Assembly: GCA_965285935.1 (NCBI GenBank)
Contig: OZ260666.1
Span: 38,192,001 to 38,256,000 of the forward strand
DNA length: 64,000 nt
DNA from: Ophelia neglecta
Lineage: Eukaryota
Direction of reading: 5' to 3'
Made by a program: the position numbers and the translations under genes. The notes under the pieces were generated by a model that saw only the letters and a list, made by a program, of their open reading frames with translations, was not told where the DNA came from and did no database searches. Of the stretch, positions 6,326-64,000 are shown piece by piece (the first letter of the stretch is position 1; each line of letters starts with the position of its first letter).

Positions 6326-9230
6326 ATGGAACGATGTCGTGTTATTTTCGCTTTGTCGTTTTTCATGTGCATGTTTCCGTCTTTCGAAAACAAAGGTAAG
6401 TGCGTTGGCAGAGTAAAATAACCAATACTAATTTTGCTTGTGGCTTGAACACTTATAATTGTCTTCTGCAGTGTTCAAATATGAGTTTCAGGCACTCCCT
6501 AATATGTCCACACACATGCCTGAGATCTTTCCGTACCTTAGTTATGATACCAAGGCCCCTGGAAGTTGAAGTTACTTGTTTTTGCCTAATATTACGTTTG
6601 AAGATGGTCAAATATAAACCATAACCCCGCCTAGGTTACCGGCGCTCTGCCGCCATTCCCTCCGGAGATAACGGTGTGAACTACAGAAGAAATGAGTCAA
6701 AATGTTGTTACTACATACAAATCATGTGCCCGTTCAGATTCAATACTAAAATTCCGACTTAATTTCAGCCTCATATTCTATCATTAAAGGTACTTTTCGT
6801 TTTGTCTTTTTTATTATGATTTGAACTCGGTTAAATGTTACAATAATTGCAAATGAATTTTTTGGACAAATTTACATAAATCATGTAAATTTTCTTGATT
6901 AACGATTTTGCTCATTTTCAATTTTTCGTCTTTAAATGTATTATTCCAGTGTTCATTTGGCGCGTTGTTTATCTCTATATGGCTATTTCACAGTGCTCCA
7001 TAAGCCACTGTGGGCGTTCCATTTGCCATGACTTTTGACTCCATAAAAATGAATATATAGAACAAAGTACATTAGATCCCTGGTCTATTCAGCTTTCTCA
7101 ATCTTGTTTTAATCCGCTCAAATTTATCAGGAGACACCAGTTATACGCCCTCTTAGACAGGTAAGGAGTGTCGAAATGTGAGCCTTTTCCGAAAAAAATG
7201 GCTTGAAAAATATGTAAAAGCATTGTTACAAAATTTAAAGATGTTTAAACTTGTGTGCAAAATCGCTATTATACATAGCCTGTTACAAATTAAAAAGTAA
7301 CCATTGCAACATTTGTAATCAAATTTCTGCCTTTCAATTTCACTCGTATTAGTCGAAATATGTGTATTTAAAAACATGATGTGCCACTTTTGGGATATTC
7401 AGTTCGGAGTGGTAACACAGGAACACAGAAATTGCACAGAACATTATGGATAAAAAAATTATGCAATTCAAGTTCATAATTCATTATTTCCTTAATTGTA
7501 ACGTTACAAAATAATAACAATTCATTTTGTAACTAGGAATTTATTTTCTCGTTAAGAATTGTTTGACTAATTAAAGTTTACAAATTTCTTTAGTTATTTC
7601 AAGTTGTCTGATGTTAGATCGATCATTATTTCAGTTGCATGTTACTATTGTTATCTTGTGAGTGATCCTAACGTCTGCTACCAGGAACAGCAGACGTGTA
7701 ATGGTCAGTGTACGGTGAGCCCGCTCATTATGTGCAAAAAATGTATTGAAGTTACACGAAAATCTTTCGGTTTTAACTCTTTTCAGTCGGCAAATAAAGC
7801 TAATATTAGTGAGCAAATTGTGAATGTTCTTTTAATTGAGGGTTACAGTGACAAGCCGTTTTATGATGCCTTCAATGAAATATTATAATATTTCAGACTG
7901 AAATAAAGTACTCCTATTATGGATATTCTACCATATACACCAAGGGATGTAGACTACTATGTGATCCTGGCAATCAAACGGCAAACAATTATTTGTTGCA
8001 AACTACTTGCTGCTCGACTAACTACTGCAACAAAGAAGGGATGACTCCTTATGCGGGTAAATTTTCATATTATTATATGGGTTTTTACTTTTATACAATG
8101 GTTTCAAGTCAGGGAGTATCTTATTAAGACCGCCGGTAACATATTAACCTAATTCATATATTGTTTCTCATTGTATGATCATGTGCATATTATTTGCCAT
8201 GTTAAAATGCCATGTTTTAAACCATTGGCACGGTGCAATATCAGACCGGTAGTCTGGAGCAAGCTGATATCATATCACCGCGCATTACAGGAAAAGTAAT
8301 TTGTTTACATGCATTGATTTCTTGACACGAACGTTCTTCTAGAATTAAGAACCTCTGATCATGTGTCAAGTCCCTGTGATAAATAGACCCTTCCAAGTAA
8401 GGTTAGGCTAACCTGGATTCTAATATTTAACTACCCGGGTGCGATTATCGAGTACAATTCACTTCAGATATTTGAATAAAACCAAATAAGAAAATGTAGT
8501 TAATTCTCTCCCTGTTTTACTGATTCCTGCAAAATCCCCGTTGTCCTGGCAGCAGTTCATCCTTCTTTATACTTGTTCTAGCTAACAGCTCGTGGGTGAT
8601 TTTTGGCATATTAGTTGGCATCTTCACGGGGATATGCTTGACTGCAATAATAATATTTTGGATGTGTAACTGTCTTGGGTGTTGCAAACGAAAGGTGAGC
8701 ATATTCTAGTTGGCATGAAGCAGTTGTGCTTCCTGTTTTTGATATTACGTCGATCAAATGTTAAACTGGTTTACCCTGTGGTCCTTTTTAATTAACCTCG
8801 AAAAGGAAGTCAATATTATATTGTAATTATGCGTTCCTTTCAAAGTTAGATATGTAAAGTACATAGATACATAAATGTGGTGTTATTTTAGAATGTTAGA
8901 AGGAGACCAGGGGTAGAAGACATCAACAATATTTCTCACACCAATCCAGCCTACGACTTGAGCGATATACCACAGCCGTTACCACCCCCTTACACGGCCC
9001 AAGACTTAAATCCACCCCCAATATACGAGGAAATAGTGCAAGATTCTGCGATTTCCGCTGCAGACCAATGCACAAGGAACTCGCCAGAACACGCAGAAAC
9101 AATATCATTCCAGAATGAAACCGGTCAGTGCGGCGAAATTCGACCATCTGTTAGCTCTGTGGTGACCGAAATAGTGGCGGGAACGGCTTCCGTTGAAAGT
9201 CCAGAAAATTGTGAGCGCGTTGACAAATAA
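6326..9230 (+). CDS. Ly6/uPAR single-pass membrane protein with NPxY and PPxY tail, paralog 2
   Basis: Exons 6326-6395, 7635-7714, 7897-8056, 8582-8694, 8892-9230, same phases 1/0/1/0. Signal MERCRVIFALSFFMCMF; ACYYCYLVSDPNVCYQEQQTCNGQCT...KGCRLLC...CCSTNYCN; TM WVIFGILVGIFTGICLTAIIIFW followed by CNCLGCCKRK; tail with NPAY, PPPPY, PPPIY. Confidence 0.85.
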
Positions 9231-18444: not shown

Positions 18445-21400
18445 TTATAGGCAAGTCGGCGTGATTTCCCGTATTATCACCCATTCTTCTTGTGACCTTG
18501 AAAAAACAATTTGAATACATTTCACCGGAAATTTCACTTTATCTTTCATGTTCTCGCTCACAAATTTCCCATGCGCGAACTCGCCAATGTTCTGGAAGTT
18601 TGTGCACACACATTTATCATTTCCTGTGGAGCTGACCATAACAAATCCGCTCCGTATGTAGTCGTTTTGCTGCTGGCTATGGCCAGATTCGATGTACAAC
18701 TCTTTCAACTTTTTGGGTGTTTTGAACACAACAGTGAAGGTGTCGTTTTCTTTGGGTTTCTTGCCCCAGAAGAAATTGTCAGACGCGTCGTTGTAAGCAT
18801 TCACTGGAATATAATCTTTATAATGTTCGACAGTAGTACATACATCTGCAGGTGGGTTCTTTCCCATGATTGGTTCAATTTGAATACTTGCTGGTTTGCC
18901 ACCACCATAGAATCTATCTTTCACTTTGACTCTTCCTTTTCCTGTGAATGAAGAAATTTCTCCCATATGTTGAAACAATGTAGGCTTCCTCAGAATTTTC
19001 TTATTTTGCGCAAGCAGCTGGTGAAAAAATGTCAACAGCCAATCGACCGGCATTTCTTGGTAAAACATCATTAGAAACCTGGAAAATCGCCCTAGATCAG
19101 ACGACCTGAATAGTTTACCGATGAATCCTAACTCGCTGAAGTCTATCATTACCCACTGTGGGTCGGATCGACTAACACTTTCTATGTGCTTTTTTATCTC
19201 GGAATCAAAGTTTTTGGTGCTCAGTACATCATCCTCAATTTGGACATAATACTTCGAGAGAGTTGACCCATAGTAGAACATGAAAGCGAAATCCACCACT
19301 TGTTTCGCCCGCCATTTTACGCGGTCTGCGTTGTCGTTATAATTCCGTTTCAATCCCTCTAACGGGGGGTAAGCTTCAGACGATACCTGCATTATCTGGA
19401 TCAAGCCTGAGTCTAGATGTGCACCATATTTCGCTTGGATAGTCTCCACAACTTTTCGTCGCCTTTCCTTGTCAGCGTCGGCTGCAAAAACCAGGAGCAG
19501 AGTGTTTTCTTTGTCCCTAGTCTCACTGAGTAGGGAGTCAATAGTGTGGCCGAGGTAAACGGTGCCAGCCACTTTACGGCACACGGTGGGTATGCCTATG
19601 GTCAGAAACCCTGTAAATTGAGAATCGTGTGCAAATTTATGATGGTTGAAAATAAAAGTCAGGTTCGGTTTCATGGATTCATTTAAATGATCGCTCACAC
19701 ATTTCAACAGTCTATTACCTGGATGTGGCTTGGTATTACCGATGATCGTGATTTGGTCAGGTTTCAGAGGTGCATAGCCCCATTGTCGTTCTACGTCACG
19801 GGCATCCTAAAAATACAGGTACACCTAACTTAATAAACCGTACCCGTCGTCATAGTGATTGAGCGGCATGGCCAGGCCGCCTTATACCTTTATATGTTAT
19901 AAGAAGGCTTTAAAGAATAAGTCATTCAACACGTAGTACCGTGTCGCCCAAATACATACATGTGTTCTATATTTAAAAACGATTATAATAATAGATCTAT
20001 AGCGTAGATGAATTTTCCTATAGGCCTATGTACCTAACTGAAACCTTCCATCCTTAAACCTTCACCCTAACCAGAATCTAGTTCATACGGTTATGTTATG
20101 ATGATATCATCTCTCGTATCTGTGTCTCGTATATGTTATTTCTTATCAGGTTTTCCAGTATGCCCGTTAAAATATGAGCATCATACTATTGTTTTGGCTA
20201 TATTTGCCTTTTACGGATTAACGGTGGATTATTCTGCAGAAAACAATGCTATTTATATAGAAGTAAGCCTATATAACTCGCTGTCCGATTGCAATGCTTC
20301 TCTTGAGGCTGCCTGTAGAAGATGGGCCGCTGGAATGTCTTTTTATATCAATGGCGGGTATTTTTTGCCGGGTGTCCGGTTATTAGTTTACTAGCAATCT
20401 ACTTAGGCCTATTCATAAGCCAACAGCTGTGAGGAGGCGGTATATGAGCCCCCCCCCCCTTTACCCCAGCCCACGCGCACCTAACCCCGCTTCCCCCCCC
20501 CCCCACAACCACCACCACTCCCACCCCATTCCCTCCCCCAGTCCACCACCCCCTCTCCCAACCGCAACACACACGTAACAATCATACGCGCGGAACAATG
20601 TCTAACAATCATATCATGAAACGTTCAAACGCGAGACCATCGATCCGGCAACGCACTGACAAAATGATTGAGTAGGCTTTTAGTTAGTAATGCCTGGGAC
20701 ATCTGAAAAGTGGCCAAGGTTTTGCACAATTTGGCCGGGCTTTTAGCGTTTTTGTTCCAAGATTTATTGCCAATGCGTAATACAATGTAACAAAATATTG
20801 CGATGGATACCAGTAATTGGCAAAAAGGGGGTTCGACATTATCGCTGTTATATCGTCAGTTATGATTAGTGCGAGGAATGAGGACTGGAATTCATGGTAT
20901 CGTCGGGAAAAAACCAGTAGGCCTATTCTCACATTTCCCTGCCACTCGTTAATGTATTAGTCAGGTCCCAACAATAAAATATATATTTATTCAAAAGATA
21001 GTTTGATTATGACTTGCATAGACGGCGACAAAGTGATATGCGCAATCATACTCACGCTGGTCAATGAGCTTTACCGGCCGCTCAACATATATCCTAACTC
21101 GCTACGGTATATCCGAGTCTCATTATTTTCATAGGGGCAAAGATTCAATGGTAAATTGAAATTCTCTAGCGTCTATTAACTGTCCATTTTCATAATTATT
21201 TCGATTTATAAACAAATAGGCCTCTCTCTTTGAAGTTTGTTTCAACATTACACTTTTCGCCGGCATATGATCGGTATTAGGTCTAACGTTATTTGCCATC
21301 AGCGACAGGTTGTAAATCATACGTATCTCACCTTGATGTGGGATTGCTTCAGGTCATGTTGAGTTTTCAGCTGGTCTGAATTGTTCGCAGATGTCATCAA

Positions 21401-22149: not shown

Positions 22150-22527
22150 ATCCATCGCCTTCCACCGCCTTCCACCGCCCTCCATAGCCTTCCATCACCC
22201 TCCACCGCATTTCACCGCCTTCCATGACTTTAGTGCCTTCAATTGTCTTCCATCGCCCTCCACTGCCTTCCACTACATCTACCGCCTTCCATCACCCTGC
22301 GTCGCTTTCCATAGCCTTCCACCGCATTCTATTGCCCTCCACCTTCTTCCACCGCCAACCATCGCCTTCCATCGCCCTTCATAGCCTAACAGTGTCTTTC
22401 ACAGACATCCACCGCCCCTCGCCTTCACCACCTTTAATCCCTCTCCACCGACTTCCATCGCCCTCGAACGCTTTCCATCGCCCTAAACCGACTTCCATCA
22501 ACTATCATAGCCCTCCATCGCCCTTCA
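22150..22527. repeat. Degenerate ~10-bp minisatellite (TCCATCGCCT / TCCACCGCCT)
   Basis: Several tens of imperfect 10-mers in tandem just upstream of MGAT4. Confidence 0.85.
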
Positions 22528-23394
22528 ACTTTGGCGGTGGCTACAGTCCCAGTTGGATTATAAGGTGAGTTGCTGTGTGTTTAGAGTGAGTGACTCCCTA
22601 ACCACTGTGATAAGTTGAGTTATCGACGTGATTTTCTACTATGACCAGGTATGCTTATTGATTACATTTTACCAACAGAAAGTCCAACAGGCACATGTTC
22701 TAAAACAAACTTTTCAGTACCAAGAGCCAGACTGTTTTGAGTAAACAAGAGGTGGCAATTTAACACCTGCCTGTTTCCATGTCGCAATACAGGTATATTT
22801 ATAAATTGCCTGTCAATTCACCTGTCCGTAACGTGCTCGCTAAAACCTTGAAACAGTCGGTAAATGCACAATCCCGTGTACAAAAGGATATTCATGCCAA
22901 TCCGGATGAATACTTATTTATTTATTATAAATTAGTCGAGTGCTCGGGGTTCTCGTAGGGTCCAAGATTAATGGAAGGGTCCTTCGCGACTCAAAATCTT
23001 TGCACAAACGTTACACTTGCAAAGCTAATTAAGTAAGCTTGATTGCGCATGTCTGTTCAAGACATCAACACAAGCCCGATACACTCCGGTAACTGCCATT
23101 ATGCAAATAACCGTAATGAAAATAAATGGCACCTACTTGCTTTCTTTTTTATCCGATTCAAACGTAAGCGGTTCTATACATTTGTAGCCACATGGAAATT
23201 GATCATCGGGGCGATTATAAGCCAATGTTCATTACAATAACGTTATTGACGTAGAATTGCCGGGACGTCACCTATCTCCATGCGTACTTCTCGTAGAATT
23301 GATGTAACAGTGCGCGGGTGCTGTACGGTGAGGCTTGGCTGGTTACGGGTAATCATCAAACGTTCATCCTGCTCGGGAATAATACATTCTATTA

Positions 23395-23748
23395 GGGAGC
23401 GTTCATTATTTATGGCCGGGGGGGGGGGGGGGGGGGGTGGTAAATTTTTGAAATGAGTACGTCAAAAAAAAATTGCCCCCCCCCTGGAAATAGGTGGGAA
23501 AAAAATTGCCCCCCCCCCCATCAAAGACAGAATTTGGCTAAGTTTTATCAGTTTCACTACACACTTTTGTACAATATATATTTCTAAATAAAATTGCGCA
23601 CCCTGTGAATAGACTAAAAAAAAACTGTCCCCCCCCATGGAAATGGGTTGAAAAAAAACTGTCCCCCCCATGGAAATGGGTTGAAAAAAAACTGTCCCCC
23701 CCCCAAATTTACCACCCCCCCCCCCGGCCATAAATAATGAACGCTCCC
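23395..23748. mobile_element. PIF/Harbinger-type MITE
   Basis: Long TIRs GGGAGCGTTCATTATTTATGGCCGGGG...GGTAAATTT, TTA on both flanks (23392-94, 23749-51), internal ~30-bp duplication. Confidence 0.85.
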
Positions 23749-26700
23749 TTAGTGTGCGTTTTCATTGAAGCGGAGGCGCTCTATTTTAGATAGAGCTCTA
23801 GAGCTCCTATCATACGGTTCAGTGATCACAATAAAGGCTTCAATGGATTGACTCACCGCCTAATCCGAGGTAATAGGGCTGAACTCAAACTCTAACCTAT
23901 ACATAAGGTCTCTGGTTCAGCACATAGTAACCTAGGCTTGTAAGTAGTCTATGCCAGAGGGAGATAGCACTACTTCCGATAATTCCCCTTGAGATATTAT
24001 TGTCATAGTAACCCCCGTCCCCCTTAGCCAGCCAACCAAAATGATTTATAAATTATACATTTACTATGTGATGTTATAAACTGTACTGCCATGGTATAAT
24101 CATGTATTACGTTTGTAAGGTAAGGCCGATTACTAAGTTGTTATAACTTGTGGCCAAACCTACTTGCATGTAATAAGGCAATAAAATATGTTTAAACTAA
24201 ACATAGTAATTTGCCGAGACCCTGCGGCCAGTAAGGTCATTTTGCCAACTAGAGTTGCTGATTTCTCGTCCTGGCTGGCGTGCTTGCAGCATCAGTGTTT
24301 CGACAATCGATGACTAACAAGGGACGCGTGACGGTTCCATTGATTTATAGCGTAATAACCACATGCTTAGCGATTTAAGGCTATACAGAGAGACAGGGGT
24401 GTTGCCACGGTCCCAGGTGGCATGTGTAGTACAGGTGTGCTTATGTTGGATTTCCCGTCAAAAAATGTGATAAAATGTCCATGGTTAACTAATAATTCAG
24501 GTACAAGCTCAAATATCGTAAATGTTAAACCAGTGTCCAGTATTAAACGGCTGAATATATTTGTGTATAACGTCACGTCAAAGGTATTCAGATAAACTGT
24601 CAGGATGTTTTAGAGAGTTTAAGGGAACCAATACGAATCGCTTATTTATAACACGGTTGTAAAATGTTAAATGTGTTATGGGCTTTTCCGATAAATATTA
24701 AAGCATTTAAAACGGTTGTAATTGCTCGGGAATTTAATCACTTTCTTAACAGGCCCCCATGTATATTAACCCATTCTCCATGTAACTTGCCATGGGCAAT
24801 CACATGGCTTTGTGATATTAAACATGAAATACTGTCAATACTTAGTCATCCAACGCTTTAAGTGGGCACTATTTTGCAGTTTAATTTATGAATTCAATGA
24901 ACCATGCAAGGTGAATTTAACTTTCCCATGGATAAAAATACCATATTTGGAATAAGGCAAAGTTAACATTGGCGGGCAATCGTTTATAAGTTAATTACTG
25001 TGTTTAATTTGTGTTAATTTCACTACTAGTTTTGATGTTAACCATTTCAGGCTCCAATGCCCGAGGTTAACTTATAATTTCTAAGTTTGACTATGTCCAA
25101 TTTAAACCGCTGTCCTCAACGGATTAGCTGGACGTGCAATGTTTCCATTGTCCTTTTTGGAATATCTTCTATATGTATGAATACACATCAGTACACATAC
25201 AATGTTGGCTAGTTGTCATAGGCTGTACATAACATTCGTTGTATATAACATACGCAAGTTAATCTTTTTGAAATAATTATAAATGAACAATTGTTACCTG
25301 TGGACTCGTTTAAAAGGAAAACAATATTACATAACATTCAATTTTGAACTCTTACCTTATTTTTGAAATGCTGCAGGAATTTTGAATTGAATTGAAATTA
25401 TTGCTACTCCTGGTATAGATATATAATCAAAATAAAGCGGCACGTGACAATAATGACAGGTCAATAGGCCCCAGGCATGCCAGAACAGGTCTAACGTTAG
25501 TGTCCGAAAGTAAAAAAATTGTAACTAAACAAATGATTCCCAGAACGGCCCTTGACTACTACTTGGCACAAAAACAACTATACACTGAAATGTTCTTTCA
25601 AGCTGTAATCCGAGAATCTCTGACGTTAAATGGCTTCTTAATGTATTTTCTACTGGATACGTTCGTAGATGTAGGCCATCTAACATATTGGCCCCCTGAT
25701 ATACCAATAAAGTCAGAGATTTTCGGACTACTAAAGCCGGAAATAACCAACAATATATAATCCAAGTTATTGCAGTTTCAGAAAAAAAACGGTTTTATAT
25801 TTAAGAATTCACATACTTGTCTCAGATAGGCTCACTTTTGAGAATCCACAGCCATTAATACGTTCTTGATTGGTCATGTGTTGTTATTTGCCTTAATCCA
25901 TCGACTGCATTGGCCTAATATTATTAGTCAATATATCTATAATTTCGACGTGCTGATCCTTAATGAAAACACTACAAACGCATGCTTGTTTCGAATGTTT
26001 GACCAGGTGATCCCTTCAGCAAACTGTCACCTGTTATTCTGCGGACGCTGCGCCACGTTGGCGCGCAAAAAACACTAAGATTATGAAACTGAAGCTGTGG
26101 GGCATTAAATAGTCCTACATGGAATATGATTTGTGGCTAGTGGCAAATAGACTTTCTTTGCATCCTGGAAAGAATAGGTGTATTCCTTTTGTGTCTAAAC
26201 TCGAATCGCTTTATGTGTAAAGCTTAATGTAACCTGCAAGGGTATTGCAATTGAATGTAAGACTTGAATAAAGTACCTCGGTTCACCATACCTTGGGAGA
26301 AAATATGGCCAAATAAATGATCAAATAGAAAAATATGAATTGAAATTCTTGTCTATATGAATCAGAGCAGCCTGAACAGTGAGGTAAGCAGGTTGCTATT
26401 TAATGTCTTCAAATGTAAAGGCCTGTGATAAATCGAAAAGTCTAACTTAATGTGAAGAGAATTTTACAGCAACTTAGCTCAAAGTATTGAGAATTCATTT
26501 TAGGATTTTTTCCTAAAATAAGCAAATGTTGTTTTCATTGATTTTTTCGTGTTCAACACGATACAACACATTATATTACAGGCGGCAGTTATGTGAGCGT
26601 AGCGTCGTTACGTGAGAGATAGTGTTCGAGGCTCCAGGGTTTTTCATAATAAAGTGCGACAGGGCGAGAACACTGTCTCACTTAGTATACGGTCAAGCCA

Positions 26701-38489: not shown

Positions 38490-39643
38490 TAGTTTGACGA
38501 CTCCTTCGTCCTTGGCCGTTCAGTTGGTTTGCCGTCTTGTTGGAGAGGGCGGTCTTTGTTCTGATAAGTAATACCATCCTTTTTACCAGACCATCTATTT
38601 TTCAATATACCCTTCTGTGATGGACAGTCAGGGCTTTTATGGCCAACACCTGAACAATTAAAGCACTTAACGTCCCTAGTTTGTCCCTGTTTGTTATCTC
38701 TGCGATGACTGGACGAAGTTTTAGACCTACCACCAGACTCCAAACTAGAGTCTGACGAAAATCGGTCCAACATCTTTTCCATCAAAGTTGACATTTGTTT
38801 CTGTTGATCTACAATGGTTTTCAACAGCGAAGATTCTTTTGGTTCGTTTATCCAATTTGCCTGCACCTTGACAGGTTTGGCGGTTGATTCACCGTCATGA
38901 GTCCACTTGATGGCTTTATCACGAAACTCATAGAATTTAAGAGTAGGTTGTTCCTCGTCCAATCTACGCAGATCTCTTTTCAGGTTTTCATCACAAATCC
39001 CTTCGCTAAACCTTTCTTTCAAGGCAGTATCTATTTCATGCCGAGACATACCAGTTTCTCTCTGTATCTTATTCATGATGCTTATGAGGCGAATGGAATA
39101 AGAATGCAGAGACTCCTCTTTACTTTGCACCTTAGTATAAAATTGATGCTGTAAAGCAGACACAGACTGATGACCTCCAAACACCTCAGTGATGATATCA
39201 AGTACACTGTGGACAGGTGTGCGACTGTTGCTACGAAACTTAACTTCGCGGCGTACATCGCCAGAAAGGTGGTCAACCACAAAGAAATGCTTTTCTTCAT
39301 TAGACATGCTTCTTTGCGAGTCAAGGTAAGAAGACATATCATTTACCCAATCATCAACATCCGGGTCATTAGGTTTCTCTGGTTTACCAGACAACTTGGA
39401 GAAACGTTTTTCTCTAGCAACAACGATGGTAGGGCCCTGGTTGTAGGAGCCACCCTGCTCAAAAGCACCATCCTGAGACCGACCAGAGGCTAAATCCTTA
39501 CGCGCACCATCAACTACCGGCTCAGGTTTTACCTCTGAAAGACTCGCCCTAAGCTTAGTGATCTCCTGCTTTAGACTCAGGAAATTTTCTTCTGTAAATT
39601 CCCCTGATCCTAACTTATTAGGGTTCTCATCATCACCTGACAT
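38489..39643 (-). CDS. gag: Gypsy Gag with CCHC zinc knuckle
   Basis: ATG at 39643 (MSGDDENP); capsid-like region; CFNCSGVGHKSPDC knuckle; pol follows in the -1 frame at the gag stop. Confidence 0.92.
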   Translation of the reverse strand: MSGDDENPNKLGSGEFTEENFLSLKQEITKLRASLSEVKPEPVVDGARKDLASGRSQDGAFEQGGSYNQGPTIVVAREKRFSKLSGKPEKPNDPDVDDWVNDMSSYLDSQRSMSNEEKHFFVVDHLSGDVRREVKFRSNSRTPVHSVLDIITEVFGGHQSVSALQHQFYTKVQSKEESLHSYSIRLISIMNKIQRETGMSRHEIDTALKERFSEGICDENLKRDLRRLDEEQPTLKFYEFRDKAIKWTHDGESTAKPVKVQANWINEPKESSLLKTIVDQQKQMSTLMEKMLDRFSSDSSLESGGRSKTSSSHRRDNKQGQTRDVKCFNCSGVGHKSPDCPSQKGILKNRWSGKKDGITYQNKDRPLQQDGKPTERPRTKESSN

Positions 39644-41256
39644 GGTGTCGGTAGGTCTATTAGCTGTTTCACAAAAAAACAAGGGGGATTAAAGATGTAC
39701 GAACCTAAGGGTTTCACCAAGAAAGAACACCGAGAGGGTTATTCAGTCTACCTATAGTGAAGCTATTTGGGAAACATCAATGGAAGCTTCAACATCTCGT
39801 GGTTACCTACAGCTTATTGCCATCTCATTCATACAGATAGCTTCTACATATATGTAATATCATTAAATATCAAAGTCATTCAACATTCATGTAAGTAATT
39901 TTCAAAATTAAATAGCAAAGTCATTCATAATTATCAATTAAATATCAAACATTCAAAAGCAAAGTTATTCAATTTCATACAAGTACATTCTAAACATTCA
40001 CTTGCAAAACACATTCAATTTTCATCAAAGTAAATATAAACATTCAAGACAATTTCTAGTTGCAAACCAAATTTTTTTTTTTTTTTGATAAATTTAGAGC
40101 AACATAATTATTACACAATATAATTCGCCTTATTATTTACATTCAATATCCATGCACTTCGGAAAGCACACAGTCACAATGATAGGAAACCAATAGACAG
40201 CTGATTACAACTATCAATCTGACAATCGTTTTACGTTTTGCAATAAAATTCAAAATCCATTCAAGCACACAATTATAACTATAATGACTCAACAGGATAA
40301 CAGTTCGAGATACAGTGCATTGTTGCTGGCAACTAATCGAAACAATACAAGTCATTCCAATATATAAACATGCATCCGTACACACAATCATTATCCATGG
40401 TTATAGACACAAGTTCAAAAGTTAGTACACAAAAGCGAAATCAGGACAGCAAAAAGTTCTCAAGTAATCATCAGTAGCAACAAGTAATTAAAACAACAGA
40501 ACCAATTCAGAAATAATTAATAATTCATATGGTACTAATGGTTACCTTCGAATGTCGGTTCACCCACGTGTATTTGTTGTCAATGTTTATGTCTGAGGTC
40601 AATCACGGCGTCGTAAAATGTTTGACACGATGTTAGTGACCATAGGACTTTATGTCAGCTACTATTGACAAGTATCTACCGGGGACAACAATTTTTAGTT
40701 GAGTGGAGTAAGTTGCATTTTAAACTGAAAATTTTGTCGAATACCTGCTGATAAAGTTCCGATAGTAGATTGACGAGTCTTCAATGTACACACAAGTTCG
40801 GAAGTCTGGCCTTCTTCTCGACGATACTCGGCGGTTCCCGTAAGCAGTCTCGACAATTCCGAAGTCGTCGGTCTGCAAGAAGTGACCTCGATCGGCTGGG
40901 AGAGAGGTTCGGCGGCAGTTTTGACCGTAGAGCGAGACAAATGCACGTGCCGAGCCTGGGTTAGTTTAACTGGTCGTGTAGAGCAGTGCAAGTTAATCAC
41001 AGTCACAGTCGAACCATACTGTAAAGCTGGAATTGACTGGCACCTCGACGAACCTAATGTTACTTTAAGTGGGGTCCCATCCTTCTATTGTAGGGCTTCA
41101 ATACTTCTCCGTGGTAGATGAATGAAACGCCTAGCAGGAGCGGCCCTTGACATCCGCCGGACTGAATCTCCAGCGTTCACCATAAGGATCAGAAATTATG
41201 CCATGCCAACGAAAAGCAATGTCCAGAAAATTCACACAACCAAATCGGGCGCCATT

Positions 41257-41847
41257 TGTGGTATTTATATATCCCCTTTTACGTTGACAAAGAGAAAAAT
41301 ACCGGGTTCAAGCATAAAACAGTTTATTACAATGGACATGCAATTCCTTGGCTGGCAATACTTTCCTGGTGTATACAAAAATCTGTAATAAAGATAATGG
41401 AATTTATCACAACCAACAATGCTCTTTCATAATTACAATTTACACCGGATTACCTTTAGCGGCACCAACTTGGTACAGTTTGTACAATTGACTATTAAGT
41501 TTGCCTTGCCGATTAAGCTAGCCTTCTAAGTGAAATATAATATATATTTTATACAAGAATTGTATATGTTTTTATGACAATGAATTAGGAAAAAGAATTT
41601 ATGTAACCCGTTCGGACTTACCCAGTAATGGACTGGATTTTGTAATGATTCCACAATGAAGGGAAGGCCGGTCCTTCGCCGGTCAATTCAAACGTGGAAT
41701 GATTACTTGGCCGGGCGCTCGGTTACACCTCGCTGAACCGCGGTATTGGTTGCGCCATAGCGGTCAGTTAGGAACCAATATATTAGTCACGCCAACAGTG
41801 GTCATTTGGGGAACTATACAGACTGGCGGGAGACCTACACTCTCACA
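41257..41847 (-). repeat. 5' LTR
   Basis: Direct repeat of 33341-33931, followed on the minus strand by the PBS. Confidence 0.95.
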
Positions 41848-55100: not shown

Positions 55101-56496
55101 CAACAAATAATCCATCAAGATATAATACACTGACAACAATTTACTGGTCTGGTGGATAAATATCATGATCTGATGATTGTCAAAGGGGGGGGGGGGGGCC
55201 TCGCAGTCATCCGAACTTCGGATATACCGAACCTAATTTCCCGATCCCGACTGGTCCGGATACGAGGGCTTGTACTGTACTTTATTTCAATAATCACATT
55301 GCCATATTCATGAGAAATATAAATTGTTAGACTAATAGAGAAAGCTGTGGAATAAAACTGATTGAGCTGTCATATCACAATACTTCTGAGGCCATGTTTG
55401 GATAACCCTATGATGATGATGCAGGTATAAAGTGATACAATCTCATTCATAGTTTACCATAACATTTCAGAATAAAAACTGCTCCCTAGTAAACTTAAAG
55501 CAGCCAATAGGGCGTTTTATTACAAAGGTCGACAAACGTCAAAGACACCATATTGTTGAAAGCTGGTAGAAGTAGATGTGCCAGTGTTTTTATGGTTTCT
55601 TGTGTTTATTATATTACTATATTTTTTTTAATTATGCCATTGAAATATGCATAATAGTATGGCATTGAAATGTGCTTCAACCAAACATTGATCGATCCTT
55701 GTTTCATTCAGATTCAAACCACACTGACCAGCCTTTTTTGATGTGAACTGGGGGTATTCAGTTACACATACAAAAAACAGCTCCATGTATTTATATCCAC
55801 ATAAATGATTCCTCACATATTTTGATATGAAATATAATTATATTTATCAATGGAAAGAAAATATGCTGGATTTCTCTTTCTAGAAAATAAAAAATTAATA
55901 CAAAAAGTTCAAAACAATATCTTTACCATATATCACATTTATGAACACACTAGTTTGCTTGCCACCGTTTGTAATTCGTTAACAGGGCATTAATTTTATG
56001 TTCGCTTTTTCTCATTTTCTGGGACCATTAGGTCCCATATTCATCATAAAGAGAAAGATTCCAATTTAATGAGTAATACATGTAAGTGCATAGCTCCGCG
56101 AAAATCACCTCCGGGGTTTAGGTTCTACCAACAATAACAATAAACTTTTTACAGGTAATTTAAGTATTACCTTTTTCCTGCACTCTTGGCTTCCGCTTTG
56201 GTTGTCTCTCCAGTAGTTCAGTTGGCCACACTGCTTTGTAATTTACTTTAGGCAAAAATGGATTGCTGGAGCTGATATATCTCTTCATAGTTTGTGCACA
56301 TTCATTGTTTTCATTTTTCTGGAACTTCTGAAGATATATTGTAAAATCATGTTTGGCACGGTTGACAAACACATTGAAACATGCCAACAGTATTAGACCA
56401 ACAGGCCTCAGATTCAACAAGGAAGAACCGGAAAATAAATTTCAAGTAAATTGGACATTTCCACAGGGGCTTTGAACCTATGTTTCTCTTAATTAC

Positions 56497-59400
56497 CTGG
56501 ATTAACTCGCTTTCATCACAAGCATCCTTGAAATAGGTATCTAAATTTTCATCCTCACTGTCAGTTGTGGAACCTTTGTTGATTTCGTACTCATATAGGT
56601 AGCTTGGCAATTCTGGAAAACAAACACTCTACTGCTAGTTTACCTTTATGAGTGGAATAATTAATAAAGTACTTTTCGTTCTCACCAGGTATAATGCTTG
56701 TTTCTTTTTATACAAATCTTACAATTTATACATTATTATGAATGAATTGATTTTAATTGATTAATTTTACTTCTTTTCCTCTTTCCAGCTGGTGCCTCAG
56801 GAGCTAACTCAACAGGGATGGCTGCAATGAAGAAAGTTGGTATACATAAAACACTTTTCTGGTGTATTTGATGAGCATTGTGTGGAGTATGTATAACATC
56901 TGAAGCACAAATACATAATATTTACTACCAAAAATGTTAATACTTAGGCTTCTTGCTTCCTCAGATGAAGCTTTCTGGGAAAGAAACACTGATGCATCAT
57001 GTGGTGGCTGAATCTCATACAGGAGATAAATCGGATCCTGGGAAGATGTGAAACTCCATGACACTGTACTGACCTATTAAAGAGAAATCAGTTAAGTAAT
57101 TATGTAAGTATAAACAGGTATTAGGATAAAGATAATTGATTTTTGTAAGCCATTTGTGGGTGTGGCGGAAGCCTCCCGTCCTGATATATGAACTTGATAT
57201 ATACGGTATAACATTGTTAGCAATTTTCCAATTCATTAACATTATTAAGGGTTGTGTACCTGACCATCATTCATTCTTTTCCATTCCTGCCCATACCAGT
57301 TTATTGAGATAAAGTGCCCTGAGTTATGGCTGCCAAAATGAATGATCATGCTAGCAAGTTTGTACACTCTCCTGTTAAACTGTAGTTCCTGGTCGAATTC
57401 CACATGGGCATTTGTTGTTCTATGATAAAGCACATATCATGGTTTTACTAAAGTTAACAAAGTTGCAATTGGTTTTCGTATGAGAGGTCACTCTGGCGTG
57501 TACATTTCAAATCACCATCTTGGTCATAAATTTCAGGGTTGGGGCAAGTACAGGGCTCATGTACTCGAGTACGAGTACTTGCCAATCACACGAATAAGAG
57601 TACAAGAAATCCTGGATGTACTCGAGTACGAGTACTTCTATGCGAGTACGAGTACCGAGTAATTTTAGAATTACCATTCAAAACAAAACTACACTCACAC
57701 TTTATACATTTATTATGTGGTTTGCTCATATGTTAGATCAAAGGGCAGTCAATAGAATTTGGCTTTGGCTAGAGATGTAATAAACAGCTACATTTTTTGT
57801 AGAAAAGCTCCATCCAAGAGCGAAACACAGCCCATACATAGAAGTGTCAAACATGAAGACACATCCTTCTTGGACACGTCCATTTTTCTTGCCTACCACG
57901 CCAAACCAGAATAGCCCATATCAACATGGCCCCCGCATCTGCGCAGAGCCTTAGAAATTGTTCATGCATATGCCTTATTGCAATTAGAGAAGTTTCCACA
58001 TTTAGAAGTAGTGCTACTTGTATGGGAATTATTTAACTACTTCCATCTTCTAAGTGTATATCTAAATGTTGCAGCTATTCAACTCTGGATCATAGGCAAA
58101 TTAATATAGTCTCCAGGGTTAAGGTTGTATTAAACATTTTATTTATTACATTTGACAGTGGCCTCACTGCCCTTTTGTTTCACCTCAAGCTACACCTCAA
58201 GCTACCTGTTACTTTTTACAATTCTTCGTATCATATTAGATAACTGCAGCAATTAGTGCATATTTAGGGAACCAAATATTACAGAAATAGGTATCATTTC
58301 CTCAATGATAAAACAATAGGAAGCAATTCTGTAACAATATATAAAAACTGACTAGCCGTAGTTTACCTGGTTATTTGTATGATCAGATTAAGTGGCAGGG
58401 CATCGTCTCCAGGGTGTTGTACAATCCTATGGCCACAGTTCTTTCCACACCTTTTTATTTTGAAAGCGCAAAAAGGGCAAATTGCATTATTAGTAAGATG
58501 ACTTTATTAGCTAAAATAGAGAAATTTGCAAATGAGTGCAATGGAGTACTGCAATGGACTTACTTGTTACAGAACTTAATGCATTGAGTGTCTAACCAGT
58601 ATTGTTCTATCAAGTCACAGAGTGATGTTGTTTCTTGGTTAACCTGTCAACAATATATAAATCTAGGGTTGCTATGCATTTTCTGTTTCAAAATTGGTGC
58701 TCTCATGATGTTTTAGGGATGTACTCCTCAATCAAATATTACTTGAATGTTTGCCTTAATTAAGGAAAATCATAAATAGTCTGGAATCTTAAAGTTCTTC
58801 ATATTTTTTTTCTTTATAAACCATGGTGCATCAGATATTGGTACTTGCCATGTTTATTGGTAGCACAGACATATCTAGTGTACACTCTGTTGTTTCAGTA
58901 CATATATCACAAATAACTGGAAACCAAAAAAAATGGGATAATGATTAATGTTTGACATGCGTAAAAAAAATCTTGTTTGGGAATATACTAGAATAATGCA
59001 AATATTCTTAATGTAGTCTTTATATAACTCAGACACTTGTTGTTGCAGGACAGAGCTAGAATCTTCACTCAATACTAGCTTAGATCATGAAGTAGTATTT
59101 TTTCATTGAAACACAAGTACAGATCTAATACCATATTTAATATAGTCTTTTTTACATATATTCATACATGTTACAACTTAAATGCTTTAAGTTAACATAA
59201 TAGGGTTTGAGCATAGTTAAACATTCATATATCATGTAGCTACAAATTGTATTACATCATTTCTTTTCTTTTAATAGCAGTATGGGCAGCAGTGCAGCTG
59301 CCACGATGGCCATGTTATTATACCTACTTTTCTGGTACGAGGACCACCAAAACATGTTAGGTATGTAATGACGTAACCCTTTAAGGGACTCTAACATCTT

Positions 59401-62400
59401 CAGCAGGACTTCTCCTGCATCCTCCATGCTGAGGTAATTCCGATCCGGCCACACAGCTATAAGATATTATGGAACTGAAGCATTATATTGTGTAAAATAC
59501 ATCCACTTAGCTTGTCTACATTACAAAAAGTTAAATCAAAGCAATTAGAATGCAGTTGATATTAAATACCTTCCAACATTGCATTCATGAGCTGTGTGTC
59601 TGCTTGTACAAAAAACTGTTTCATTAAACACACAATGCATTGCCGCTGAGGTGAACCTGAATACAATGAAGTAAAAATAATGTTTCGTATGAATTTAAAT
59701 TAAGGAAGAAAAATATTGCATCACACAATTGTCGGCAAGCGGTGAAGAGCTTCATTAATGGTTATCACTTAAACAGATGCTGTGCATAACTACATGTTTT
59801 TACTTACAGTCTTTATGCATGGCCAACAGACGATGTATTGAAGACATTCGGAGAAATTGGCAAACTGAATTAAAGAAACAAGTGTTTCCGGTGTTTGGCA
59901 GTCCACCAATGTCTTGTGCTGGTATGGCTGAAACAAATGGCAAGCTATGAAAGGGTGTGTTGACTACTGTAAAGTTGGAAACTTCTCCTCTATCAATTTC
60001 AGGGTGAATATAAAAGTCTATAAATGCCTTGAAGTAAATGCCTTGCAAACATTTCTGACTTAACAGTGAAATATTAATAAGAAACTGTGAACAGATTGTA
60101 TATGTTGAGTAAATAATATTGTTCTATAAGCCCGACATGGCTTCCTGTAGTGTCACAGAAAGTAGTAATTCCATAGTTTGCTCAAAGTTAATTGCATACT
60201 ACATGTACTTACAATTTACTACGAGGTGGTGTTGCTCTAATCCATCCTCCAAGGTTGCTTGGCAGCTGTCGGAACTGGCAGAGGTAGATGATAACACTGC
60301 TTCTGATACAGGCTTGCCGGACCCAACTTGGGGGACATACACAGATGCTTGCTCCACAGACCCCTCCTCCAACTCTTGCAGTATGCTTATAATTTCCGAT
60401 TCTGTGACTGTGGATCCTGCAATCGCCATAGAAAACCACATTGGTTTTAATATGAATAGATTGGAGAAACATCAGTATCTTATGCACACAGTTTCCCTTT
60501 ATTGACCCATGTACAAAATTAAAATACCTTCAGATTTTTCATTACACTGTGTCTGCTCTTTTGGTGCTTCATCTGTCTGCAATACCAACAATTAAAGTTT
60601 GTATAAATTGGAGATGTTCAGTACAATATAGTTTAGGAAATAATGGCATTAAAAAAACCATTAAGAAAGATAAATCTTTTGGACTCAACATGTTTATTCT
60701 TACCTTGTGCAAATGGCTAACAAATACTGGTTTTATTTGATCGTATGGCACTCTGGGTGCCAATGGGGTCTCACCCAGCATTGTCTTTAACTGTATCCTC
60801 TGATTTTGATCTATTTCAGATATCCTGTCACAGTACGATTGTTTTAAGTTAGGCAGTTTCATATAAATTTACCATTATTAATGCTATCAGTTAATGATCT
60901 GCAATTAATTCCTTATATTACACAGTAAGAAATGTAAAAGTAAAAAGTAGAAAAATCATATTTTCCTACTTGTATGGACCTATCCACTTTTTTTCCATTG
61001 CACCACCCTTCCGTCCAATGTTCTTCATGTTTTTTTTCAGGACGGTGTCACCCACATGCAAGTCAAAAGTCTTTACACCTTTAGCCTTGCGTTTCTTGAA
61101 ATTTTCCTTCTGCTTCAGGTGGGCATTTTCTTGATTACTAATGACCTGTTCATGAATTAGAGATGAAAAGTAATTATTAATATGTTTAAGGAATAGAAAG
61201 TTTAACAAAATGCTTTTGTTATTAACTAAATTTATCATGTCCTGTGGATACCATGTTTGCTTTGTAAGGCTGATTTGTCCCTTTAACCGTAAATGAAACC
61301 CAGTATACATGTACATCACATTCTACAAACGTTCAGCAACAGCACCTTTTTGTAAACACTATCCCTTTGTTTCATTGTACTTTCTACATGCACCTGCAAG
61401 TCGTCTTCCATCACTTCGGAGGGACATTCCATGTTTTCTGCTATGTCTGACATCTGAAAATGCATAAAGCAAGGTGTTAAGAAATATTCACTGAAGGCAA
61501 AAATGTATGGCCTTGATCTATTTAGAATTACATCACAAATGTTCATATGAAATGTAAATTAAGAAAACAAATAACCAACCTCCAGGAGAGAACGTGGATG
61601 GCGACCAAACATAAGATAAAATGGACTGAATTTTGTAGATGCCTGTGGTTGAGTCCGTATTGAAAATGCAACATCTTCAAGTACCTAAGTGCCGAAAAAA
61701 TGCATGTTTTATGTAACAGTTAGTGAAAGCAGAGCTTATGGTGTTAAATGCAACCAGCCATTTCCATTTGCACTGATTTAGTTAAAACCAAAATGCAACT
61801 TTTTTGTCTCAAATTTTTATGTTTATTCTTTTGTTGTAGCACAAGTAAGAAAGAACTACAAAATTGTTTGGTCAATATTATAACTCTAGCAATGACAGAT
61901 GCAGTTGTTTTTATTACCTCATCCCATTTGTTATTTTCAGAAGCCAGTTTGCTGATTCTTGTTTTTACTGTCTGGTTTGTTCTTTCATCAAGGCCATTTG
62001 TTTGTGGGTGATACGCAGATGTTACTGATTTCTTTATTCCATGCTTGATGCATAGTTCTTCATTGATCTATTGAAAGTAAGGTATATGCACTTGGTACCA
62101 TTTTTAAATTCCCTTAACCCTTTTAACTACCAGAGTGCCCTTGTTCAATCAGCCTAGCCAGAGATTTTTGCCAGAACAATGGACAGATAGACCTTGAGTT
62201 CAGGCTGCAGCATTATTAGGAAGTATAGAGGGTTACCAATGCGCACAGGGAAATGTTCTGAAGAGAGCAGAAATGTTCTTTAATGCTTTATTTCAAATGC
62301 CATTTGTCAAGCTACTGTAAGTATCCTATATTCTAACTTAGGGGGGAGATTATTAATGCTTTTGGTATATTTGAGCTTTTAATACTTATATGACTAACTT

Positions 62401-63526
62401 TGTTGCAGAATTCCCTTCCTTGATCTGACAGCAAGCGCATCGGAGCCCCCCATCTGCATATAAAAGATTTTATGCTCTTGCTGACATTAACAGCGGTCTT
62501 TGATGGTAAGGCAAACAGCTCTACAAATTTAGTGAAATAATCAGTCATTGACATCACATATTGACTGCCTCTTTCTGTTATGGGTAGGGGACCTGAAAAT
62601 TTGAGCATGTTCTATCAATTATGCAGGAGGATTGAAAAAGCATTTGAGTAGCATACTGTATATAAAACCGTGTAGCACTTAAATGTTGTATATATGAAGA
62701 AATAATGTATCTACATTATGGTGTAGTTAATAAACCAAATCACCTATCAAGTCCATACCAACAAGTTCCAAAGGTTGTGTCACCTTTATCTGCTGAAGTT
62801 CTGGTGCCTGAGTTTTCAGCAGTTCAAATTGCTGGCATGTTGGACAGGAGGAAATCTATGGTTTCAAAATCATTTTTACATAAATATATAATGTCTACTT
62901 TTTTTGGCTAGCAGTTAGTTTACATAATTTCTTAAAGTACATGTTTGTATGGTGCATTTAAGTATAGCACTCTCCTACCAATACAACAGTACATGTGTAT
63001 CAGAGACCACTAAAACAAATGTAGACTTGGCATTGTGATTATATTTTCCATAATCGGGAATATATTTACATATTCTTTGACATCTGTTTTCATCCTGTCC
63101 CACCAGTAGTGGATGGATATTTTGTTTTGGGTGTTGTTAACCCCACTATGTCCTCCTAGAGCACTTGAGTGGTGCTGGTGCAGGATATCCTTTACTTCTT
63201 CTGGATCTGTCACGCATTTACGTGGTCCTTTGTCCTTGTCAGCCACGTAGAACAGATGATCTCCTTCAAAAGGCCAGTTGATTTGTAAGTTATCATTTAT
63301 TAATACTTAAGTAATGTGGAACATGAATTGAGATGAAAAAACCTTAATATATGGATAACCTTCATATTGAATTATCATTTAATTATTTATATTGTGCACC
63401 TTTCAAAATGTGGGTATTCAACCCATTTCGGGCATTTCTCTGTTGCTGTTTTGACAGTCCCGGCAGCTGTTTTCTCTCCCGTGATAGATAAATTATGTGT
63501 GCCACCTTTTCCTTGTAATGGCTCAT
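56497..63526 (-). CDS. GIN/Ginger-type DDE integrase-transposase fused to a USP (peptidase C19) domain
   Basis: Phase-consistent exons 63400-63526, 63070-63263, 62744-62855, 62399-62592, 61918-62067, 61580-61684, 61346-61453, 60970-61145, 60704-60824, 60528-60576, 60213-60416, 59808-59927, 59570-59656, 59328-59456, 58849-58916, 58564-58643, 58367-58450, 57260-57419, then ~56929-57073, ~56772-56822, ~56497-56612. Integrase motifs HHSSALGGH...CPTC, GMDLIGP, LSDQGREF, NGLDER, WIGPY. USP motifs GLPNTGNTCFFNS, MEDAGE, CDIC/CNKC, LPLNLIIQITR, IHFGSHNSGHF, WKRMNDGQV, IYLLYE. 3' end not resolved. Confidence 0.85.
57534..57665. mobile_element. hAT-like element end with GTACTCGAGTAC subterminal repeats
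   Basis: CAGGGTTGGGGCAAGTAC followed by repeated GTACTCGAGTACGAGTAC; inside the intron preceding the USP His-box exon. Confidence 0.55.
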
Positions 63527-64000
63527 CCTCACCAAGAAGGAAGTGTGGGAATCCTGGATAAAATGTATATGGTAAATTATGTGGATTGATAGTTTATTAT
63601 ATCCAAATGTGCATCCACTCACTTGTTAGGGTCAGTTTTTGGGGTCATAAAATTGATATACATAATCACCTCTTGAACCGGATCTGATATTGGCTGTTCT
63701 GACTCAGGCTGCACACTTTTGGGTTGTATGTCTGAGACAAATGTTCTCTGAATACCATCTGCAATAAATGACCAGTTTATTTATCTTCAACACACGGAAG
63801 GGCAAGTGTATAACATTTTGCTTATTTACAAAAAACGTGTCAACTTTAGATAGTTAATTACATCATCCAAAAGTATTTCTGCACAGACTAATGTAAAGTC
63901 AAAATATTAAAATTCATGCTTCTTTAGATAACCCATCAAGAATTTGGAAGACTGATTTTCTTTATTTTCTGTGCCTATTGGACAGGAGATATCTTAGGTT

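Follow-up and report, generated by a model that had tools for sequence, protein, structure and literature searches.

We analyzed a 64,000-nt stretch of the genome of Ophelia neglecta (GCA_965285935.1, contig OZ260666.1, positions 38,192,001–38,256,000 of the forward strand; hereafter the window), which is eukaryotic DNA and AT-rich (~36% G+C). Its minus strand carries, from 63526 down to 56160, a candidate intron-rich gene in which the exons of a Ginger1-type integrase are followed by those of a USP deubiquitinase. All coordinates are window positions. Stop-free stretches were listed, the sequence was read, and an exon model was built and checked by a script. Domain, structure, and homologue searches were performed with one exon at a time.

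The model comprises 22 exons, beginning with an ATG (63526) and ending with a TAA (56162–56160); every junction is in phase, and no internal stop codon occurs (Table 1). The dinucleotide AG is present at all 21 acceptors, and GT at 20 of the 21 donors; the donor of exon 15 is a GC (gcaagt). The 21 introns range from 62 to 947 nt, eight of them fall within the integrase part, and the gene is 7.4 kb long. In the stop-free stretch that precedes the exon 1 ATG, there is no earlier ATG. A preliminary description of this DNA had reported 18 consecutive exons joined in phase with no stop codon, with the USP His box in the eighteenth, as well as abundant introns, and our model reproduced both observations. 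It had also counted 756 codons up to the His box and three exons beyond it. The chain held, while the count did not: 800 codons precede the end of exon 18, or 786 or 773 if either of two alternative acceptors is considered. Similarly, the three further exons were recovered, but 56497, where that model ended, is a donor, and another exon (56327–56163) reaches the TAA.

The complete model amounts to 954 codons; the acceptor that we prefer for exon 2 (63264/63263) shortens it to 940. This acceptor was preferred over the alternative at 63305, the one chosen in the preliminary description, because it fits the spacing of Ginger1 proteins and because an AG is found at the equivalent place in a metagenomic relative (contig L005, see below). 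We noted that in-phase joining by itself is weak support for an exon chain, since choices of GT and AG are plentiful. Two candidates were tried and rejected. An extra exon at 58328–58283 has no phase-compatible donor, and exon 17 is joined directly to the His-box exon 18; the other reading frame of exon 1 (KCPKWVEYPHFE) cannot be joined in phase to exon 2. Separately, palindromic repeats of the GTACTCGTACTCGAGTAC type lie at 57500–57700 within intron 17, probably as a small inserted repeat, and palindromic repeats make up much of the length of this intron (947 nt, the one long intron).

Table 1. Predicted exons of the candidate minus-strand gene and a possible polyadenylation signal, in window positions.
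Feature	Coordinates	Strand	Content
Exon 1	63400..63526	-	ATG 63526; N-terminal block LP...R-x-A, like Gin-1/Ginger1 (by eye); phase-1 donor
Exon 2	63070..63263	-	G-DHLFYV and His-His half of the H2C2 finger; Integrase_H2C2 match
Exon 3	62744..62855	-	CxxC half of H2C2; first catalytic Asp (GMDLIG)
Exon 4	62399..62592	-	Integrase core; second catalytic Asp (LSDQGREF); rve match
Exon 5	61918..62067	-	Integrase core; catalytic Glu (HPQTNGLDERTNQT); rve_3 match
Exon 6	61580..61684	-	End of integrase core (STKFSPFYLMFGR)
Exon 7	61346..61453	-	Acidic spacer, no recognizable homology; canonical splice sites, phase 0 to 0
Exon 8	60970..61145	-	Basic cluster KKRKAKG; GPY motif (WIGPY), read from sequence
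Exon 9	60704..60824	-	Post-GPY stretch K-ISEIDQ...; last integrase-like exon; strong donor AAG/gtaaga
Exon 10	60528..60576	-	Linker, 16 codons; weakest-supported member of the chain
Exon 11	60213..60416	-	Linker, acidic and Ser-rich
Exon 12	59808..59966	-	USP Cys box GLPNTGNTCFFNS: catalytic Cys, Asn five residues before; alternative in-phase acceptor 59927
Exon 13	59570..59656	-	USP region past the Cys box (CIVC...)
Exon 14	59328..59456	-	QDAxE-like box MEDAGEVLL, read from sequence
Exon 15	58849..58916	-	First CxxC pair CDIC; GC donor (gcaagt), sole non-GT donor
Exon 16	58564..58643	-	USP finger region
Exon 17	58367..58501	-	Second CxxC pair CPFC; LNLIIQIT strand; weak acceptor, 62-nt intron before
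Exon 18	57260..57419	-	USP His box HFGSHNSGHF; W-x3-ND
Exon 19	56944..57073	-	End of USP fold (PIYLLYE), read from sequence
Exon 20	56771..56821	-	Basic cluster GKRKR, possible nuclear localization signal
Exon 21	56497..56612	-	Acidic tail; preliminary model ended at donor 56497
Exon 22	56160..56327	-	55 codons, basic end KRKPR, TAA 56162–56160; absent from preliminary model
ATTAAA, possible polyadenylation signal	56065..56070	-	93 nt past the stop codon

The integrase part and its relatives

Searches against Pfam matched the integrase exons individually: Integrase_H2C2 on exon 2 (E 3.7e-15), rve on exon 4 (E 1.3e-8), and rve_3 on exon 5 (E 3.5e-5). By reading of the sequence, the zinc finger residues (H-x3-H and C-x2-C) are intact, as is the catalytic D-D-E triad (Asp in GMDLIG, Asp in LSDQGREF, and Glu in DERTNQT), and a GPY motif (WIGPY-K-I) spans the exon 8/9 junction; exon 8, which holds the GPY motif, gave no Pfam match alone. 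The Pfam matches and the residues thus bear out the Gypsy-like integrase with HHCC, D-D-E, and GPY that the preliminary description had recognized, and of the three Pfam families that it had named for a search, UCH was matched as well, in the USP part.

Ginger1 and Gin sequences were compared by eye on a printed alignment (Additional file 3, PMC2836005). The motifs DLIGPLPIT, LSDQGREF, SAYHPQTNG-DERTNQT-K, WDE, and STKFSPF-LMFGR are held in common with the Hydra elements Ginger1-5 to -8_HM, and exon 5 is ~60% identical to Ginger1-6_HM, a value that we counted ourselves on that alignment and not with a tool. At the N-terminus, the pattern LP..R-x-A...LFYV is similar to Gin-1 and Ginger1-5, and its spacing fits the exon 2 acceptor 63264/63263 better than 63305. 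The block before the zinc finger also aligns by eye with Gin-1/Ginger1-5, and the YPYY motif is partly recognizable: the ~40 aa that lead up to the zinc finger contain LFY and, upstream of it, a Tyr and a Pro, but no adjacent Y/F-P pair. No gag, reverse transcriptase (RT), or RNase H was found in the 474 nt upstream of the ATG (63527–64000), the only 5′ flank visible in the window, in line with what had been described. Because no RT or RNase H stands in front, and because H2C2, an intact DDE triad, GPY, and the long motifs of Hydra Ginger1-5 to -8 are all present, the integrase is, as judged from its sequence, a member of the Ginger1/GIN group and not a generic Gypsy integrase. The same features of a stand-alone integrase uphold the GIN/Ginger assignment of the preliminary description.

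We also considered whether the integrase is a leftover of the pol gene of a Gypsy long terminal repeat (LTR) retrotransposon that landed beside or within a USP gene. H2C2, DDE, and GPY/F are common to Gypsy and Ginger1 integrases (PMC2836005), and a young Gypsy element is present in the window. Moreover, in a word-indexed homologue search, in which a length filter keeps full-length relatives from being seen with a single-exon query, the H2C2 exon gave one weak match only, to a Gypsy pol fragment. Nevertheless, such an origin is very improbable. Exons 2–6 are colinear with the integrase of the Gypsy element in the window, but the identity is 26–43% for exons 2–5, compared to the ~60% that we counted between exon 5 and Ginger1-6_HM; exon 6 is 61% identical over 18 aa. 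The long motifs are shared with Ginger1, an ATG and a Gin-1/Ginger1-like N-terminus stand directly before the zinc finger with no RNase H, and the eight introns within the integrase part also argue against a pol leftover. In the viral scan, the rve exon found no match.

A close relative emerged from a metagenome scan with exon 4. It is present in two JGI contigs that are nearly identical, L005 (925–1720) and L006 (940–1540), where the equivalents of exons 2–6 lie head to tail with no introns between them and are 50–75% identical. Exon 3 (54% identical to L005/L006) abuts exon 2 there, exon 4 is 75% identical to L005/L006, exon 5 (67% identical to L005) abuts exon 4, and exon 6 is 73% identical to L005. 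Junctions 2/3, 3/4, and 4/5 coincide exactly with the predicted splice junctions, and 5/6 is off by about three residues. Since the exons abut in these contigs, introns 2–4 are validated, as is intron 5 to within three residues. The copy is decayed, with two frameshifts and one stop codon common to both contigs, and L006 has an extra repeat insertion within its exon 5 equivalent. Neither contig reaches as far as the GPY and USP regions, and exact look-ups of their open reading frames (ORFs), made to extend them, returned no record.

Upon inspection of the upstream limit of this relative, we noted that the homology of L005 breaks off at an AG acceptor whose place and phase match those of the acceptor that we prefer for exon 2 (63264/63263, intron 1). 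For this reason it is doubtful that L005 is a plain processed retrocopy. The L005/L006 relative may have intron 1 as its one remaining intron, as a Ginger1 element might, or it may be a retrocopy that was truncated, in which case the AG would be a coincidence. Another metagenome contig, L007 (98–3123), encodes an ATG-started integrase (rve, GPY, Integrase_p58_C) with a 572-aa tail that has no known domain. No RT is seen in its short upstream part, and the contig may represent a further integrase gene or element of the stand-alone kind.

The USP part and its predicted join to the integrase exons

A match to Pfam UCH was found at both ends of the profile. Exon 12 aligned with profile positions 2–22 (E 1.2e-3, below the Pfam cut-off) and exon 18 with positions 190–236 (E 9e-7, 29.2 bits against a cut-off of 23.9). 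Among proteins of known structure (PDB), exon 12 aligned with the Cys box of USP2 (E 0.004), and the SGHF of the exon 18 His box was aligned to USP30. We also built our own USP profile from database hits and ran it on all 352 open stretches that the two strands of the region contain; exon 18 ranked first (E 1.8e-15) and exon 12 second. By reading of the sequence, the USP catalytic residues are intact, namely the Cys (GNTCFFNS, with an Asn five residues before), the His of GHF, and ND, and two CxxC pairs (CDIC and CPFC) and a QDAxE-like MEDAGE can be recognized. Between the points that match UCH positions 22 and 190 there are 188 residues, where the profile has 167 positions. OTU and Ulp1 gave no match on any exon.

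The spacing and the motifs are compatible with a complete USP fold, which is what the preliminary description had claimed. The Cys box, the His box, and ND of that claim stand; the middle of the domain (exons 13–17, and exon 19 after the His box) is predicted from the read motifs and the spacing.

How the two parts are joined is the critical question for the architecture. The last integrase exon and the first USP exon are 738 nt apart in a gene-poor 64-kb window. Exon 9 has no stop codon and ends at a strong donor, and each of the six splice sites from exon 9 to exon 12 is canonical, with pyrimidine tracts. Exon 11 is acidic and Ser-rich, as the linker had been described. Because exon 9 is stop-free with a strong donor, the sites are canonical, the gap is 738 nt, and Ginger1 proteins offer a protease precedent, we read the integrase and USP exons as one gene that would give a single transcript. 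The join across exons 10–11 is the weakest link of this reading.

Several findings weigh against a single gene with a complete USP domain. Exons 13–17 and 19, searched singly, gave no USP match in Pfam, in the PDB, or with our own USP profile. A comparison of the His-box exon with 1.84 billion representative proteins returned 11 matches, all of them generic or multi-domain USPs apart from one false positive, and none with rve; more generally, no rve+UCH protein or orthologue was found in single-exon searches. Exons 10–11 have no homologue, and the 90-codon open stretch of linker exon 11 had no database relative in the word-indexed search. Finally, an ATG-started ORF at 60441, in the frame of exon 11, could begin a separate USP gene. 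The His-box exon also found no match in the metagenome and viral scans.

The missing homologues of exons 10–11, the ATG at 60441, and the absence of rve from the USP relatives found would suit a pair of neighboring genes in the same orientation: an integrase gene derived from Ginger1 that ends near exon 9 and a USP gene that starts in or near exon 11. The in-phase chain over exons 10–11 would then be only apparent. Plentiful GT and AG sites make in-phase paths easy, the exon 11 region is stop-poor in several frames, so that its openness is weak evidence, and an AATAAA lies just past the exon 9 donor. We consider two genes unlikely, both as an arrangement and as an explanation of the in-phase chain. 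Reading through past exon 9 adds 44 stop-free codons before the AATAAA is reached, and less than 740 nt of a gene-poor region would need to accommodate both a 3′ end and a promoter. The six canonical splice sites with their pyrimidine tracts also argue for one gene, and there is a Ginger1 precedent for exactly such a fusion (PMC2836005).

A resident gene or a mobile element

Next, we weighed whether the single gene is resident at this locus or part of a transposon. Published Ginger1 elements have 0–4 introns, terminal inverted repeats (TIRs) of 40–270 bp, TGTNR ends, and 4-bp CCGG or CCGT target duplications (PMC2836005). No TIR was seen between the 474-nt 5′ flank, which ends at position 64000, and 4 kb of 3′ flank, and no target-site duplication (TSD) followed by TGTNR was present upstream within the 474 nt. 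No second copy or fragment of the gene was found in the 64-kb window. The preliminary description had proposed both a look for TIRs with a TSD and a count of copies, and within these limits neither produced a sign of a mobile element. Separately, YNACA followed by CCGG occurs at 53404, 2.7 kb below the stop codon; this is the pattern of a Ginger1 3′ end with a target duplication, at a frequency expected by chance, and the partner end would fall beyond position 64000.

The 21 introns, one of them with a repeat insertion, have the look of a long-resident gene. Given these introns, and given that no TIR, TSD, or second copy was seen in the window, we lean toward a resident, single-locus, Ginger1-derived gene. 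In this interpretation, which we hold at about even confidence, the locus is a single gene, rich in introns, with 22 exons and ~940 codons that encode a Ginger1-clade integrase, an acidic linker, and a C-terminal USP domain. Such a gene would be domesticated or on its way there, and it keeps all catalytic residues.

Other observations pull in the opposite direction. The catalytic triad is fully preserved and closely resembles the triad of active Hydra elements, which favors an element that is still mobile, and the known domestications of Ginger1 lost the triad (Imagin; Gin-2 by our reading of the alignment) that is kept here. The sole close relative, in L005/L006, is decayed, as expected of a transposon family, and the 474-nt 5′ flank is too short to exclude a TIR.

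The locus could thus be an autonomous Ginger1-family transposon, still or recently mobile, in which a USP has replaced OTU or Ulp1 and whose ends are out of view, the 5′ end beyond 64000. We regard this as possible, if rather doubtful. HHCC, DDE, and GPY are all intact and very near those of active Hydra Ginger1-5 to -8, and an integrase with a C-terminal cysteine isopeptidase is the architecture of a Ginger1 transposase (PMC2836005). The decayed relative comes from another organism and may keep one intron as Ginger1 elements do, and introns occur in Ginger1 genes (PMC2836005). However, 21 introns in a gene of 7.4 kb compare with 0–4 introns in elements of 2.6–7 kb (PMC2836005), and the flanks, the lack of a second copy in the window, and the repeat-bearing intron described above also speak against mobility.

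Several known systems help to place the resident gene that we favor. Like the Ginger1 elements, especially Ginger1-5 to -8_HM (Bao, Kapitonov and Jurka 2010), it has a Gypsy-like integrase that stands alone, without RT, and contains H2C2, DDE, and GPY/F. Long core motifs are identical, and in both cases a cysteine protease that acts in the ubiquitin/SUMO system forms the C-terminal part. Its introns are GT-AG with one GC-AG; those of Ginger1 are GT-AG too, with one GC-AG case reported (PMC2836005). It differs in the class of the protease, here a USP (Pfam UCH, peptidase C19), in its 21 introns, in its length (~940 aa versus 500–800), and in that no TIR or CCGG duplication was seen within the visible flanks. 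Ginger1 transposases carry OTU or Ulp1, and one also a PHD finger, but not a USP (PMC2836005), which confirms the add-ons that the preliminary description had listed.

Among host genes, vertebrate Gin-1 and Gin-2 are likewise multi-exon descendants of a Ginger1-5-like element, are TIR-less and integrase-only, and Gin-1 has a very similar N-terminal block (LP..R.A..LFYV). By contrast, they have 6–8 introns and no reported protease domain, and in the printed alignment Gin-2 is without the second catalytic Asp, whereas the triad here is intact. Imagin of malacostracan crustaceans (PMC12863088) is another Ginger1-derived, multi-exon integrase-like gene of invertebrates, single-copy and without inverted repeats; its DDE triad is lost and a ubiquitin protease is unmentioned, unlike the intact triad and USP described here.

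The combination of a DDE transposase with a C19/USP deubiquitinase has a precedent in Trichomonas vaginalis XP_001314237.1, an IS5-like transposase (transposase_11) with Peptidase C19 (PMC2836005). That protein is from a protist and belongs to an unrelated transposase family, and the likeness is one of cited architecture alone. Helitrons and Helentrons (OTU; VTD family, PMC9741609) also encode a mobile-element protein with its own papain-fold deubiquitinase, and some are domesticated, but these elements are of the rolling-circle type, with RepHel, and the proteases that they carry belong to the OTU and VTD classes. NYNRIN/CGIN1 is similarly a domesticated integrase fused to cellular domains; its integrase is retroviral in origin, and its partner is an NYN domain protein rather than a deubiquitinase.

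The preliminary description had named no known C19/USP fusion. Our full-text literature searches found neither an integrase-USP fusion nor a Ginger1-type integrase with a USP, and to this extent the statement stands. It does not extend to DDE transposases in general, given the Trichomonas protein. Because the same source cites that fusion and proposes a broad role for ubiquitin pathways in transposition (PMC2836005), the novelty is narrower than first claimed: it is the USP on a Ginger1-type integrase, and the theme of a transposase with a ubiquitin-system protease is already known. We tentatively suggest, at less than even confidence, that a Ginger1-type integrase gained a ubiquitin-system protease of a third class, unrelated to OTU and Ulp1, and has survived as an intact gene with many introns.

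If the predicted protein is made, three basic clusters would carry it to the nucleus, where the integrase part would bind DNA, may still cut it, and would multimerize via GPY. The tethered USP would strip ubiquitin from its own protein, or from chromatin or repair proteins at the bound site, and its action would shield the complex from ubiquitin-driven removal or shape repair. Escape from turnover and deubiquitination of histones, the roles put forward in the preliminary description, may likewise apply.

Proteases of the ubiquitin/SUMO system occur in Ginger1 transposases, in Helitrons, and in some elements of the Mutator and IS5-like groups. To our knowledge, nobody has shown why transposable elements carry such proteases. 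Should the fusion be real and active, it would provide independent, convergent evidence that removal of ubiquitin at the integrase site is needed for this kind of transposition, and a USP in place of OTU or Ulp1 would mean that the activity is selected, not a particular fold. In a compact protein of this kind, the DDE and Cys-His activities would be separately mutable. If domesticated, the gene would give a host genome its first known deubiquitinase guided by an integrase, and with it a natural means to probe the link between transposition and ubiquitin; with its intact triad, it would also differ from Gin-2 and Imagin, which lost theirs. Were it merely another transposon family or two neighboring genes, its interest would be one of annotation.

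Other features of the window

The Gypsy LTR retrotransposon in the window occupies 33337–41552. Its 300-nt LTR stretches (33337–33636 and 41253–41552) are 100% identical, and both ORFs are open on the minus strand: a gag ORF at 38492–39688 (PNMA-like and CCHC) and a pol ORF at 34350–38519 (RT, RNase H, H2C2, and rve). The element looks like a very young insertion. A 206-codon open stretch at 31150–31767 (minus strand) contains a Pif1 2B helicase domain and is probably a Helitron remnant.

At 18448–19806 (minus strand), a 453-codon open stretch encodes a MGAT4-type glycosyltransferase (MGAT4_cons, MGAT4A_C). It starts without an ATG, and a further 5′ exon is likely. Its best database match is 59%, Capitella teleta reaches 45%, and several annelids are high among the named matches, which points to an annelid or another lophotrochozoan as the source, probably one absent from the protein collections. 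A scan against Rfam gave no match.

In each of two similar sets of open stretches on the plus strand (1837–3642 and 7571–9227), a tail with PPxY motifs comes after a Cys-rich module that looks Ly6-like by eye, which suggests that the sets are tandem paralogues. Lastly, a G+C-richer block (0.45) at 22150–23760 contains repetitive Pro/Ser-rich open frames on both strands.

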